A stretch of DNA of 11,729 nucleotides from Octopus sinensis. Lineage: Eukaryota. The stretch is taken from assembly GCF_006345805.1 (NCBI RefSeq), contig NW_021826877.1:1-11729 (forward strand), given 5' to 3'. The notes beneath the pieces were generated by a model, which saw only the letters and a program-made list of their open reading frames with translations, was not told where the DNA came from and searched no databases. Numbering within the stretch: the stretch's first letter is position 1; every line of letters begins with the position of its first letter. A program made the position numbers and the translations under genes. Shown here in pieces: positions 1-10,890 of this stretch.

Positions 1-551
1 GGATACTGCATTTCGAGAGAATGTTCGTCCATATCCTGTTGTATATTTATTTCTTTAAATATTTTAGTATTTCTCAATTCTTGTATTACTAAAATATATA
101 TAATATAAATAAATTATATTATTGAAATTAATTAAATACATTTTAAATCAACTTGAAGATTTCCTAGTGGTGTCTCCACTATTTCAGCAGGAGACAGAGC
201 ACAGCCTCTAAAGCCAACATGATGACTTGGTCCTAACACAAATACACGTGATCTGGGTAGATTAGGTCACTTTTAAAGAACATGTTGTCTGTATTTATCT
301 GTTTGTAAGCATAAGCTGCAGTTGGTCCACTGTATGTGTAGCCGGCATGTCTGTATGTGATGATTTATATATTATATTACGGGGAAATTATAGCACGAGA
401 AGATTCTGTGAATGACTCTGCTTTGTTGAGGTATTCTTCGAGTTCATTTGACAATGAATCAGCTTTTTTGATGTTATTTTGAATATATACCTCTATTTTC
501 ATACCACGAACCAGCATGAGAGGCTTCTCGTACAAGTGAGTGGGTTTGCAT
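1..551 (-). CDS. MEMO1: MEMO1 (mediator of cell motility 1), 5' part. Exons 551-491, 462-381, 350-282, 252-140, 88-<1; introns 28, 30, 29 and 51 nt. Continues beyond the window start.
   Basis: Manual splicing at GT-AG sites gives an uninterrupted frame: MQTHSLVREASHAGSWYENRADSLSNELEEYLNKAESFTESSRAIISPHAGYTYSGPTAAYAYKQINTDNISRVFVLGPSHHVGFRGCALSPAEIVETPLGNLQVDLKLIQELRNTKIFKEINIQQDMDEHSLEMQYP. It has the MEMO signatures REASHAGSWY, PHAGY, GPSHH and DEHSLEM. Not in the ORF track because of the introns. Confidence 0.95.
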
Positions 552-2698: not shown

Positions 2699-3214
2699 AT
2701 GGCATCCGACAGAATGTCACTTCCCAAACAAAGTCCAGACGAATCCAAAATATACGACAAGAGCTATTTAAGTCTAATCACTTTTGGATAAGAGTGTGCT
2801 TTTGTGTATGATTGTGACCTCACTGAGCAGAGTGTGGCTATTTCAGTGGTGATCAGTGTTTCTGCAATCCGGGTTCAGCGCGGCTGGGGGAGGATTCGTG
2901 GTATTCACAGGCATGACGTCTCTTCTGTCTAATCTACTAAACATTGCATTATGTTTCTTTAAACTCAATTCTCGCTTCAATGAAAAACACGTGCACATGG
3001 GTGAAATAATTCTAAATGGACTCCTGTGCGTGTTCTACGCCATTTCGGCTATCATTTCGGGAACTAACAGTAGAGTCATGTATGGGGATGTCAGTCCCAA
3101 CTCGATAATCGCGGCGGCGGTATGTCTTCCTCTTAATGTCAGGTCATCTCATCCATCGGCACAGTGATTCACGGAATAGTGGCTTTTCGGTCGTACATGT
3201 TACTGGAGAAATAA
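2699..3214 (+). CDS. MARVEL-domain four-TM membrane protein (CMTM/plasmolipin-like), about 155 aa. Introns 2806-2830 (25 nt) and 3120-3142 (23 nt). Two single-base frameshifts (about 2782-2785 and about 2866) in this sequence, so either a pseudogene or consensus error.
   Basis: Repaired and spliced: MASDRMSLPKQSPDESKIYDKSYLSLITFWIRVCFCSVAISVVISVSA-SGFSAAGGGFVVFTGMTSLLSNLLNIALCFFKLNSRFNEKHVHMGEIILNGLLCVFYAISAIISGTNSRVMYGDVSPNSIIAAAVISSIGTVIHGIVAFRSYMLLEK*. Four hydrophobic helices with MARVEL-like D-x-S-Y-L, E..LN...C.FY and AAA motifs. Introns read GTATGA...CTCAC...CAG and GTATGT...TTAAT..CAG. Confidence 0.75.
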
Positions 3215-3427: not shown

Positions 3428-3824
3428 AATTCTAATTAACGGAATCAGATTTTTTTTTAAAAACAATAAGGACGTGAAAAGATAGCTATGCTAATTACTG
3501 GCGTCACGAGACACCCGGCCAGCCTCGCGAATGGCGAAGCCGTTCCCTCGGATCACAGCAATCGACAGACGTTCCAGGAGCCAAGAATACTCTCTTGGAT
3601 CGTGACTAGTCCTTGAAATCCGTCGGCCGAACGAGCGAAGGAAGCGGAGTGTCTTGGGGCCGAAAATCCCGGAGGACTCCACGGCAATTGGAGTAAAGAA
3701 CAGCGAGTTAGAAAGATAGCCGTACTTGAGAATCTTTTGGTCCTCGGCCTGCCTCGAAGCGTGCCCAGGACTGAGCGAGATTTCCAAGCGAGAACGTGTC
3801 CGAACAGGTAGAATTCTAATTAAC
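3428..3824. repeat. 13-bp direct repeat AATTCTAATTAAC at 3428-3440 and 3812-3824 (TSD-like)
   Basis: Exact 13-bp match with different neighbouring bases on both sides. Confidence 0.8.
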
Positions 3825-3837
3825 TGTCCCAAACAAG
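3441..3837 (-). mobile_element. 5'-truncated CRE-clade-like non-LTR retrotransposon: C-terminal restriction-like endonuclease, short 3' UTR and A-tail
   Basis: Translation LVWD^TTCSDT...PGHASRQAEDQKILKY...FTPIAVESSGIFGP...FGRRISRTSHDPREYSWLLERLSIAVIRGN matches the CRE-type RLE C-terminus (WDxT, KxxKY, PxAxExxGxxG, RLSIAVxRGN). Stop at 3491-3493, A9 tract at 3450-3458. The first about 35 aa of ORF 3491-3916 are read-in from flank. Confidence 0.85.
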
Positions 3838-4473
3838 AAAATATTAATTCCGAATTGTCGACTCTAATAATGATATTCACTTTTTTTCTGTCTATAAGTT
3901 TGATATTTTTCTCCACAGATAAGGATAATAACAGGGAATGAATTTTTTTTGATATTGTTTTAATATTTTAGGGCCGACTAAACTCTTTTATTCGAGTTTT
4001 TGTTTCTCCTCGGATGTATTCTTAATTAAAAATAATATTACAATTGATTATAGAATACTTTACGTCTCTATAACTAATTGCTAAAAAAATAGTCAATTTG
4101 ATTCATTCGAAACGCCCTAATATAGTAAATTTAATATTTTTCATATTCAAACCAAATATTGTTGGTTTTTATCTGCTAGTGTGTTATTATATTTAAGTTG
4201 TTAAAAAGTAGTTTTAAATACTGGCCTGAGATACCAAAAAGTCACCCACAAATGCTGCTTTTATATCTCAATTTGATAAGTTGCATTTCTGACTTATTCA
4301 TTCTTCACGTCTCTAGAATTTTTTATATTCCAGATATTCTGGACTGCCTTTTAATTCCTCTCTTAATTAATGTTTAAATTATTTTCTAAGAAAATATTTT
4401 TGTATAAACTTTGTCACCTTCCAGATAATATACTCATATAAAATGTCAAAATAATAAAAAATTGACTTTAAAT

Positions 4474-5163
4474 TTTTAATTCGTTTTTAAACCAATAATA
4501 ACTTAATAGTTAATCAGAAACTAAGCAGATCTCACTCCAGCTCGCTGATATCCACTCTCCTTCTCTTGGAAGAAGAGTCTACTTCCAGCTGCCTCTTACT
4601 CCCCACTACCACATCTGATTCAACCATTGCATCTTCTTTAGCATTCATTGGGTCGTCTTCATTTTTGCATGCCATCTCCACATACCGTTGGAAGCAGAAG
4701 CGTATTCTTCACCAGATACCTTCATTCCGTGCTTGTGTTCGATCATCATACTCTCGAGCGTCTTTTCAGTACAACGGATTGGATGTATGTCCTCGTTCCT
4801 GCTTCAATAGATAATTTCTTCATATAATTTTTGAAGCATTTCGAGACAACTCCATCCCATGTCATAACCACAGGAATTATTTTTACTTGACAGCTATACA
4901 GAAGCGAAAGCTCACTTGCCAATAGGTCATACTTGTGACACTTTTCAACCTCCACTTGCTTGAGGCGATCCTGTGAAGTAATACCCACTTCAATTAGATT
5001 TATTTCGTTTCTGACTTTGTCGTGGACAAAGATATCTGGCTTGTTATATTCTACTTTTGTTTCGGTGAGGATTGTAGAATCAACCCTGATTTCAACTTTT
5101 CCCGTCGACAGTGTTGACTGAACAGAATGTCCCTTCAATCGTCTTGCTTTTTTGAGTCCATAC
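4474..5163 (-). mobile_element. 5'-truncated R4/Dong-like RLE non-LTR retrotransposon, 690 bp, flanked by 13-bp TSD ATTGACTTTAAAT (4461-4473, 5164-5176)
   Basis: Exact 13-bp direct repeats lie precisely at the edges of the GC-richer, endonuclease-coding insert. 58-nt 3' UTR ending in a short A run. A paralogous uninterrupted site exists at about 6992-7130. Confidence 0.9.
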
Positions 5164-5165
5164 AT
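4532..5165 (-). pseudogene. PD-(D/E)xK restriction-like endonuclease domain plus acidic/basic C-terminal tail, frameshifted
   Basis: NKPDIFVHDK...LIEVGITSQ...EKCHKYDLLASEL...IIPVVMTWDG. One extra A at 4763-4766 restores VLKKTLESMMIEHKHG. A further shift near 4680 gives VEMACKNEDDPMNAKEDAMVESDVVVGSKRQLEVDSSSKRRRVDISELE*, with TGA at 4532-4534. Confidence 0.85.
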
Positions 5166-5530
5166 TGACTTTAAATAAATAAAATCAAAATAAATGATAA
5201 AAATAATTGAATTTCAAATTCTATAATTAGTAAATGAAAGTTGATAGAGCTAGTCCTTCCAAATCAAATCAAATAAACACGTACATATAACTAAATCAAC
5301 CACTTAAATTTTATTAATAAGAGATTCCATGATAGAATATACATTTTTGTGTCTATTTCAGGTCCTTGTAAATTTGATGGGAAATTTTTTAACATCTTAT
5401 TAATCCTCAATTAACACGTGAATGTGTTTAAAATTTTTACGATTTAAAAAATTTTTTGTTCAGATTACATTCTTGATGTAGGCTGTAATAATTAAGACTT
5501 AATAACTAATTTTATTAAAAACTTAATCTC

Positions 5531-5593: not shown

Positions 5594-5833
5594 GTCAAAA
5601 ACGTGCAACCAATTATCTAATACAGTTGTTCTTTAAATTTTTTGCCTTGCGTACACCTTGCTATCTAAATAATTTTTCGATTTAAAAAAATAAGGAACAA
5701 AATATTTAATTATTAAGATGAATGGTGTTGTTTATCAAACACTAATCTATCAATTTCTGGATCCTTTGACTAAAGATACACCATTTAGCCTCGCACGATG
5801 AACTGTTTTTAAACTAAACAACAAACTTAATTA

Positions 5834-5900
5834 CCGATAATCGGCAAAGTGGCCGATATGCCGATTACCGATTATCGGCCGATTAATCGGTGCACCTCTA
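5834..5900 (-). mobile_element. hAT-type transposon terminus: TIR TAGAGGTGCACCGAT on the minus strand plus a subterminal CCGAT/ATCGG array; the element body would lie to the left
   Basis: Eight CCGAT/ATCGG pentamers in 57 bp, including the palindromes CCGATAATCGG, CCGATTATCGG and CCGATTAATCGG, ending in ...GTGCACCTCTA at 5900. This resembles the TAG(A/G)G(G/A)TGCACCGAT ends of animal non-autonomous hAT elements (recognised from memory). Confidence 0.65.
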
Positions 5901-5902
5901 CT

Positions 5903-6097
5903 ATGAACCCATCTCATATCGAATCGTTTCCAACATTCCAATGCTTAATTTGCTTAACCAATAACACTCGCAAGAAGGCGAGAAAGTGCTTTGACTGTAA
6001 GAGAGATGTCCACCTATCTTGTGTCGGCTTAACTAAGTTATCATCTACAGCCCTCGCAATCTGGAAATGTCAAGCGTGTCACTGTATTAGATGTTAA
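5903..6097 (+). CDS. Orphan PHD finger (64 aa from ATG 5903), probably a mobile-element fragment
   Basis: CLIC-x11-CFDC-x4-H-x2-C-x13-WKCQAC is a Cys4-His-Cys3 PHD with the conserved W. The first 18 aa of ORF 5849-6097 are merely the translated hAT repeat array. Confidence 0.7.
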   Translation: MNPSHIESFPTFQCLICLTNNTRKKARKCFDCKRDVHLSCVGLTKLSSTALAIWKCQACHCIRC

Positions 6098-6652: not shown

Positions 6653-7509
6653 AGTCGGAAATGTATTTATTTTTAATCTTTTAAATAAAGACGGAGTTAC
6701 AAAATTACATTTTTCAAAGAATTTGTTACCGGAATTTTCAGGGAATGTCCGTCTAATTAAACAAATTCTTGACAAATTGAGGTTTCATAAATATAGAGCA
6801 ATTTTAGAACTATCCCAAACCGACTTTGAGTGAATAAGCAGAACTCTCCAAAAATATTTTTAATAATCAATATTTTAAATTTCGTGAAAGCACTCTAGAT
6901 ATATTATGAAGCATAAAGGTGTTTTTGAAGATAGGATAAAGAAGAAAAAATCATTTGAACCATCATCTCGGATAGTTCGCATATATAAATGACTCATATT
7001 AAAATAATACAAAAAAATTGACTTTGAAGGAATAAAATCGTAATAAATGATAAAAATATGAAATTTCAAATTCTTTAATCAGTAAAAGAAAGTTCATAAA
7101 GAATTATTCCTTCCAAATCAAATTAAATAAGAATGTGAAAAATACCGATAAATAACACAAACTAAACCAATTACGTGTATCAGCGTGCTTAATTTATTAG
7201 GCTTTCTTTTAAAGATAGGTTAACCATAGTTTACTAACTGTAATTTTAATAAAATAATTTTTATTTTTATTAAGAAGAGATCCCATGTAAACTATACATT
7301 TTTATTTGTTTGTTTAGTATTATATTTCTGATGTTATTGGTACTTGCTGCTCGGCAAAAAACTACAAAATTGACTAAAAAAGAAACCTCGGTGTTTTGTC
7401 TCGACTGACCACAGGGTTTAAATTATTTACTAATCAATCATCAATGTTAACAAAAATCGGCTTTTTACGTCTTAGTATTAGTCGGAAATGTATTTATTTT
7501 TTTAATCTT
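6653..7509 (+). repeat. Dispersed 28-30-bp direct repeat AGTCGGAAATGTATTTAT(T)nAATCTT at 6653-6680 and 7480-7509
   Basis: Identical except for T-run length (5 versus 7). Confidence 0.75.
6992..7303 (+). repeat. Diverged paralogue of the host sequence around the R4-like insertion (4432-4473 joined to 5177-5348), lacking the insertion
   Basis: Shared blocks include ACTCATAT, AAAAATTGACTTT, AATAAAATC, AATAAATGATAAAAATA, AATTTCAAATTCT, TCCTTCCAAATCAAAT and AAGAGAT(T/C)CCATG...TATACATTTTT. The 7-kb copy has about 90-100 extra bp near 7165-7250. Confidence 0.8.
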
Positions 7510-10367: not shown

Positions 10368-10890
10368 CAATAACACTGATATTTTCAAACACATTTTTAT
10401 ATTCAAATTCAATAATATTTTTCACCATTTTACTATCGCTTTATATTAATTTAAATTACACTGCTTTTAAGGAATTTAGTCCAGCAAATGCGTCTTTTTG
10501 AATTTCTGAAATATGATTTCTGATTAAAATTCTTAAATATTTTTATCTTTTTACATTTCCTGCAGATTCTTCAAATTTTTCAATCCAAAAGGTTGAAACA
10601 ATTTTACATTGGAGCTAAGAATCAGCCTGATTTAAATTAAGTTATCACAAAAACATTTTAACAACTTTTTGACAGTCTTTAAAAAATGTAGAATTTATGG
10701 CCACAATTCGAGAATTTTGAATCAAACTTAATTACTTTAAAATATAAAACATTTGTTTTGTGTCTTCTCTGCATTTGATTGAATTTTGTTTATCAGAGGC
10801 CGGAAACGAGCAAACAAGTGAATGGGAGATGTCCCAACAGGCACGTGTACTTGTTATTTGAATAATATGTATAAAAATAATATAAATCAT
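10368..10890 (-). CDS. Secreted or surface leucine-rich-repeat protein, 5' part. Exons 10890-10751, 10726-10655, 10626-10555, 10531-10460, 10432-about 10370; introns 24, 28, 23 and 27 nt. 3' end unresolved, possibly degenerate.
   Basis: MIYIIFIHIIQITSTRA (signal-like), CWDISHSLVC...KC cap, then three exact 72-nt phase-2 exons: LIQNSRIVAINSTFFKDCQKVVK, LILSSNVKLFQPFGLKNLKNLQE, ILIRNHISEIQKDAFAGLNSLKA, followed by KMVKNIIEFEYKNVFENI. One LRR per exon. Absent from the ORF track. Confidence 0.85.

Follow-up and report, generated by a model that had tools for sequence, protein, structure and literature searches.

The locus considered here raises two linked questions, namely whether the very short segments that interrupt a conserved coding sequence at one end of an 11,729-nt stretch of DNA (hereafter the window) are spliceosomal introns, and from which organism this DNA comes. 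The interrupted gene lies on the minus strand at positions 1-551 and is a MEMO1 orthologue, of which the window holds the 5' part, as read from the reverse complement of positions 1-620, with its ATG at position 551. Exon 1 (551-491, 61 nt) starts at the first in-frame ATG after a stop codon and encodes MQTHSLVREASHAGSWYENR. It is followed, on the same strand, by intron 1 (490-463, 28 nt, GTATAT..AAG, phase 1), exon 2 (462-381, 82 nt), intron 2 (380-351, 30 nt, GTAATA..CAG, phase 2), exon 3 (350-282, 69 nt), which carries the HAGYTYSG metal-site histidine motif, intron 3 (281-253, 29 nt, GTTCTT..CAG, phase 2), exon 4 (252-140, 113 nt), where GPSHH is found, and intron 4 (139-89, 51 nt, GTATTT..TAG, phase 1), whose GC content is 6%. 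Exon 5 (88-1) is at least 88 nt long and continues beyond the edge of the window. When the splicing and the reading frame were worked through, the four complete exons and the four introns had exactly the sizes given in the initial annotation, and the donor hexamers and AAG acceptors listed there proved correct when re-read from the sequence.

Joined in this way, the exons encode a protein of 137 aa that matches the Pfam Memo family (PF01875) with a score of 140.5 bits (cut-off 27; E 7.6e-41), over profile positions 1-127 of 269. Residues 7-136 align without any gap to residues 4-133 of human MEMO1 (PDB 7m8h), with an identity of about 50% (E 7e-38), and the sPHAGYTY and LGPSHHV motifs are both kept in this alignment; the C-terminal metal ligands fall outside the window. 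In the protein search, identity to the proteins of named animals ranges from 45 to 55%, with none above 55% and no one animal closer than the others. The conserved histidines of PHAGY and GPSHH correspond to His49 and His81 in the metal site of human MEMO1.

Several properties of the interrupting segments are those expected of introns. All four start with GT and end with AG, as do the four introns of a leucine-rich repeat (LRR) gene elsewhere in the window (see below), and excision restores a continuous and conserved reading frame. Any single MEMO1 intron would, if retained, introduce an in-frame stop codon, and this also holds for the two with lengths divisible by three; removal would therefore be obligatory. 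The MEMO1 introns are also poorer in GC than the exons (18% vs 38.5%). In addition, the human protein was aligned to the DNA with a custom protein-to-DNA aligner that allows GT..AG gaps of 15-120 nt, and to which no junctions were supplied. The output consisted of the identical four introns, with a score of 310, compared to 26-38 for 15 shuffles of the same DNA and to 117 when introns were forbidden.

A different reading would be that these short segments are not spliceosomal, and correspond instead to eliminated sequences of the ciliate type, to assembly artefacts or to the decay of a pseudogene. It can draw on the many alternative GT..AG paths that are open in AT-rich DNA, as seen in the region of the MARVEL-like gene described below and in a wrongly started model of the LRR gene, and on the splicing being here deduced from homology. 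Listing GT..AG paths blindly, starting at a presumed ATG, was in fact tried as a method to define junctions and was dropped: it produced hundreds of alternative open frames in the AT-rich LRR and MARVEL regions, so that GT..AG borders and an open frame are by themselves insufficient evidence, and homology or repeat periodicity is needed in addition. In the case of MEMO1, all four segments are of the GT..AG type and their excision gives the gapless alignment to the human protein, with a score far above that of any shuffle. The MEMO1 exons moreover contain no internal TAA or TAG, and a ciliate genetic code is thus not required.

The positions of the MEMO1 introns bear both on this question and on the age of the gene structure. 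The window was compared with the annotated MEMO1 loci of the tick Ixodes pacificus, the nematodes Gnathostoma spinigerum and Meloidogyne graminicola, the rotifer Didymodactylos and the fungus Coemansia, with each protein threaded through its own DNA. The tick gene has exons of 61, 85 and 69 nt, followed by introns in phases 1, 2 and 2, and introns 1-3 are those of the window, the difference between 85 and 82 nt in exon 2 being due to one extra codon. Exon 4 of Ixodes is annotated as 127 nt (OZ285908.1; 8152-8278 of the stretch compared), which adds 'GERHS' to the protein; with a GC-AG donor, its length would become exactly 113 nt. Since this donor, 113 nt into the exon, restores the conserved protein, the public tick model is probably mis-spliced, and the fourth intron of the window would then have its counterpart in the tick as well. 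In Gnathostoma, two exons of 38 and 105 nt add up to 143 nt, the sum of 61 and 82, and are followed by exons of 69 and 113 nt, so that introns 2-4 are in common with the window. The same three introns are found at homologous sites in Meloidogyne, along with additional ones. The genes of Didymodactylos and Coemansia are intronless in this part and have no position in common with the window.

Three of the four window positions are thus exact in the tick, the fourth being so only with the GC-AG donor, and three of the four are present in each of the two nematodes. Because both position and phase recur in a tick and in two nematodes, the MEMO1 intron positions are old, and the initial annotation, which had called them ancestral-looking, is justified on this point by the comparison of orthologues, at least for bilaterians. 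The segments lie exactly at the intron positions and phases of the tick and nematode genes, and segments of the same length class are present in five other conserved genes of related contigs (see below), both of which argue against a non-spliceosomal nature; it is exceedingly improbable that ciliate-type elimination, misassembly or pseudogene decay accounts for them. The MEMO1 interruptions are instead supported as real GT-AG introns at conserved animal positions, and their splicing in vivo would be expected from homology.

Independent support for a class of ultra-short introns comes from the repeat periodicity of the LRR gene, located on the minus strand from 10890 to about 10363. Its introns, all in phase 2 and bounded by GT..AG, lie at 10750-10727 (24 nt), 10654-10627 (28 nt), 10554-10532 (23 nt) and 10459-10433 (27 nt), the very lengths that had been proposed for them, and they delimit three consecutive 72-nt exons (within 10460-10726), each of which encodes one leucine-rich repeat. 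The first exon (10890-10751) encodes a signal-peptide-like, Cys-containing segment, and the spliced product passes the Pfam threshold for LRR_8 with 40.2 bits. The situation is less clear for a MARVEL-like gene on the plus strand (2699-3213), for which introns of 25 and 23 nt had been suggested and whose match to Pfam MARVEL is below threshold (22.8 bits vs 32.8). The 23-nt intron (3120-3142, GTATGT..CAG) is credible; once it is excised, both the stop codon and a fourth hydrophobic helix are recovered. The 25-nt intron, on the other hand, is one of several paths, as the 5' half of the gene can be read either with it or with a 21-nt intron and a frame change. Near position 2870 (2770-2900), the hydrophobic segment SVAISVVISVSAI is encoded in one frame and the main ORF in another; this frame change could reflect either a 25-nt intron that skips the first helix or a 1-nt indel, due to an assembly error or to decay.

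As to the second question, the origin of the DNA, the window as a whole has a GC content of 33% and is mostly transposon-derived, and it is through its transposons that it can be connected to other sequences. The transposon ORFs of the window match RefSeq proteins labelled Octopus sinensis with 89-99% identity, and the contigs concerned belong to the assembly GCA_006345805.1. An exact look-up of one ORF of the window matched no record. A 1.85-kb integrase-type element (Pfam rve) occupies positions 836-2686 on the minus strand, with terminal inverted repeats of about 28 nt (836-863 and 2659-2686) and a frame that is broken by frameshifts. It is flanked by MEMO1 and the MARVEL-like gene, which are oriented divergently, and lies 13 nt away from the ATG of the latter. 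Positions 837-2626 are 98.9% identical, over 1803 nt, to a copy in VCDQ01009500.1 that has an intact frame of 434 codons, and, judging from this comparison, the element has the appearance of an integrase-type DNA transposon that was recently active. Likewise, the 3' fragment of a reverse-transcriptase element (4492-5166, minus strand), whose relatives carry RVT_1, shares 99.4% identity with VCDQ01005537.1 over 677 nt. A word-indexed protein search with the 193-aa integrase ORF nonetheless missed the RefSeq protein of VCDQ01009500.1, which another query found and whose locus has the 98.9% DNA identity given above, with long identical translated stretches; the lack of close matches in that protein search is therefore not reliable evidence of their absence.

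Other features of the window are less well defined. Immediately downstream of the reverse-transcriptase fragment, direct repeats (5164-5249 and 7017-7101) are 82-88% identical and 1852 nt apart, and may be the ends of another element. A GC-rich block (3480-3830, 45% GC) overlaps an ORF of 141 codons on the minus strand (3491-3916) that has no Pfam match; positions 3478-3541 are 92% identical over 64 nt to the examined stretch of VCDQ01001336.1, and this block is probably another repeat fragment. A short ORF at 5849-6097 has a weak match to the PHD finger (23 bits, slightly below threshold), and just upstream of it lies a GC-richer palindromic stretch (about 5830-5890) with ccgataatcggc repeats. 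Searches for tRNA and Rfam families across the window returned none.

Stretches of four contigs of the octopus assembly were examined: VCDQ01005537.1 (258038-282737), VCDQ01009500.1 (1-12335), VCDQ01000515.1 (111865-132785) and VCDQ01001336.1 (6683-27444). Each contains at least one conserved gene with very short introns. A PSMD14 gene in VCDQ01009500.1 has eight introns of 26, 23, 25, 75, 24, 22, 35 and 25 nt, in an Antp-class Hox gene of VCDQ01005537.1, a 29-nt intron separates the YPWM hexapeptide from the homeodomain, an animal-type actin gene in VCDQ01001336.1 has a 32-nt intron after codon 41, and a calmodulin-like gene in VCDQ01000515.1 has introns of 28, 25 and 21 nt. VCDQ01009500.1 also carries a DEAD-box helicase gene that is apparently fragmented in a similar way, and a Na+/H+ exchanger gene is apparently also among the tiny-intron genes of the four contigs. 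The genes called in the examined stretches are transposon-type ORFs only, such as LOC115231938 and a 'KRAB-A domain-containing protein 2-like', which bears out the earlier statement that ORF-based annotation misses the host genes of this genome.

These observations could be taken to mean that the window comes from the nuclear genome of the octopus itself, with tiny-intron genes that are the host's own, all the more so as the only near-identical matches in the databases are records labelled Octopus sinensis, RefSeq proteins included. However, introns of 21-35 nt in conserved genes, such as those of PSMD14, actin, Hox, calmodulin-like and MEMO1, are restricted to dicyemids and myxobolids among the 51 animal genomes that have been surveyed (PMC13644364), and the dicyemid Dicyema japonicum was isolated from O. 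sinensis (PMC6736024). The calling of nothing other than transposon-type ORFs as genes in the examined stretches also argues against such an origin, which is accordingly very unlikely.

The properties of the introns fit well with those published for dicyemids. Pooling the 22 homology-defined introns of the window and the four sister contigs gives a median of 26.5 nt, with 18 of the 22 at or below 30 nt; the 20 introns of the short class have a mean of 26.4 ± 3.6 nt, while the remaining two (51 and 75 nt) are extremely AT-rich. In comparison, Dicyema introns have a mean of 26.2 ± 1.9 nt at conserved positions (PMC2222250), and a median of 27 nt, with two thirds of introns below 30 nt, is the figure attributed to Ogino 2010 as cited in PMC6543705. 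The 22-intron pool shows the length distribution of the dicyemid class, i.e., a narrow one around 26-27 nt with about two thirds of the introns below 30 nt. Splice signals are likewise reduced. Among 18 tabulated introns, donor position +3 is A (10 introns) or T (7 introns), positions +4 to +6 are unconstrained, and acceptor position -3 is A or C in 7 introns each; there is little information beyond GT(a/t) and AG, and a polypyrimidine tract is absent. A branch-site motif (TRAY, 5-20 nt from the 3' end) is present in 10 of the 22 introns, vs 9.5 ± 2.2 in shuffles, and is thus not enriched. This agrees with the published logos: in dicyemids and myxobolids, the signals are reduced to GTa and AG, and branch A residues are only weak (PMC13644364).

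Myxobolids, which are myxozoans, i.e., parasitic cnidarians, must thus be considered as another possible source, since the length of the introns and the reduced GTa/AG signals fit them equally well (PMC13644364) and the GC content of the window falls between that of Henneguya (29%) and that of Dicyema (36.7%). Other observations point away from them. The known hosts of myxobolids are fish and annelids, the transposons of the window are 99% identical to contigs of an octopus-derived assembly, and one of the linked contigs carries the Antp-class Hox gene with its YPWM hexapeptide. Such a gene is characteristic of bilaterians and would not be expected in a myxozoan. In addition, the window is dense in transposons; transposable elements are described as relatively scarce in myxozoan genomes (PMC13644364), as opposed to 49% repeats in Dicyema (PMC6736024). 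A myxobolid origin is, as a result, very improbable.

The transposons themselves suggest yet another source, a microsporidian or other fungus-related parasite with short introns. For both the integrase and the reverse-transcriptase families (1871-2452 and 4492-5166, respectively), the nearest named relatives besides the 'octopus' contigs are found in microsporidia, with identities of 52-57%; Nosema granulosis, Dictyocoela (D. muelleri), Hamiltosporidium and Enteropsectra provide the best named homologues, and Cucumispora is likewise among the nearest relatives. This level of identity shows kinship of transposon families only, and the likeness could result from families shared among parasites, from host contamination of those microsporidian assemblies or from horizontal transfer. 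Moreover, the MEMO1 fragment, which is about 50% identical to the human protein without gaps, has four introns in a coding sequence of 413 nt, at positions that are common to a tick and nematodes, whereas introns are few in microsporidia and are marked there by strong signals at the 5' splice site and the branch site. In the fungus Coemansia, this part of the MEMO gene has no introns, and the linked contigs carry Hox genes and an animal-type actin. An origin from microsporidia or their relatives is hence extremely unlikely.

It is thus highly probable that positions 1-551 contain the 5' part of a functional-looking MEMO1 gene from a dicyemid mesozoan, with ultra-short but otherwise ordinary U2-type introns at ancient bilaterian positions. 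A dicyemid source is indicated by the combination of a bilaterian Hox gene, introns of about 26 nt, a transposon-rich genome and an octopus sample, and the published genome of D. japonicum has 67.5 Mb, 36.7% GC, 48.9% repeats and 6.2 introns per gene (PMC6736024). The assignment to dicyemids, made indirectly from host association, intron class and the bilaterian Hox gene, is very probable, and within this group a Dicyema species hosted by Octopus sinensis is the most likely source. Each of the other origins considered, whether myxozoan, microsporidian, ciliate or true octopus, is far less probable than a dicyemid one. The initial annotation had proposed a myxozoan or a dicyemid, and not a microsporidian; this proposal holds, and can be narrowed to a dicyemid on the basis of the 99%-identical transposons shared with contigs of the octopus assembly that carry Hox and tiny-intron genes.

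A simple scenario can be proposed for these introns in the dicyemid lineage. The MEMO1 introns would have been inherited at ancient bilaterian positions and would since have shrunk to the size of about 26 nt that is typical of the lineage, with an occasional longer and very AT-rich intron, such as the 51-nt one of MEMO1. Their removal would rely on canonical U2-type splicing, with the introns, very short and AT-rich, being recognized by intron definition; the contrast in composition between exons and introns might help this recognition, which would operate without a polypyrimidine tract. Given that no branch-site motif is enriched, the mechanism of recognition is here a matter of inference.

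The presence of such DNA under an octopus label has consequences of its own. In the octopus reference assembly, at least four contigs, totalling about 1.1 Mb, look like dicyemid DNA co-assembled with that of the host, and the literature that was searched contains no earlier mention of such contamination. We give even chances to the proposal that the sister contigs, and perhaps the window too, belong to the public Octopus sinensis assembly (GCA_006345805.1 and its RefSeq copy), in which a large part of a dicyemid genome would then be co-assembled and unflagged. If true, dicyemid transposon ORFs would have been released as 'Octopus sinensis' RefSeq proteins, and the real genes of the parasite, with their 21-35-nt introns, would escape the annotation pipeline. 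False 'octopus' genes and spurious signals of host-parasite transfer could then arise from these contigs. They would also represent a long-read resource for dicyemid genomics, possibly from another species or strain than the one already published.

That dicyemids have ultra-short introns at conserved positions is already known, since 2007-2010, and was revisited in 2019 and 2026 (PMC2222250; Ogino 2010; PMC6736024; PMC6543705; PMC13644364). The MEMO1 gene of the window is in this respect one further clean example and no discovery. Such introns nevertheless matter in several ways: they bear on the minimum size of spliceosomal introns and on how these are recognized, and genes that contain them are missed by gene finders that impose a minimum intron length as well as by ORF-based callers. 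Here, the host reference assembly appears in addition to hold parasite contigs, with transposon proteins labelled as octopus.

Among known systems, introns of comparable smallness are found in ciliates (about 25 nt in Paramecium, 15-16 nt in Stentor) and in the nucleomorph of Bigelowiella (18-21 nt). These organisms are not animals and some use other genetic codes, whereas the introns of the window lie at animal positions and the standard code suffices to read its exons. At the protein level, the gene is comparable to human MEMO1 (PDB 3bcz, 7kq8 and 7m8h; PF01875), with which the window shares 130 gapless residues as well as PHAGYTY and GPSHH; the differences are that only the 137 N-terminal residues are present in the window and that its introns measure tens of nucleotides. 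Myxobolids (Henneguya salminicola, Thelohanellus kitauei and Myxobolus spp.; PMC13644364) resemble the window in the conserved positions of their introns and in a 5' splice site reduced to GTa, with median lengths of 22-27 nt. They differ in belonging to the phylum Cnidaria, in their hosts and in having relatively few transposable elements, in contrast to the bilaterian-type Hox gene and the octopus sample of the window-linked contigs. Finally, dicyemids (Dicyema acuticephalum, D. japonicum and Dicyema sp.; PMC2222250; Ogino 2010 Gene 449:70; PMC6736024; PMC6543705) differ from the window in nothing of substance, MEMO1 itself being, as far as could be seen, absent from the genes illustrated in those papers. 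They share with it the length class of the introns, their conserved positions, the presence of several introns per gene, the reduced splice signals, a repeat-rich context of moderate-to-low GC content, and the association with Octopus sinensis.
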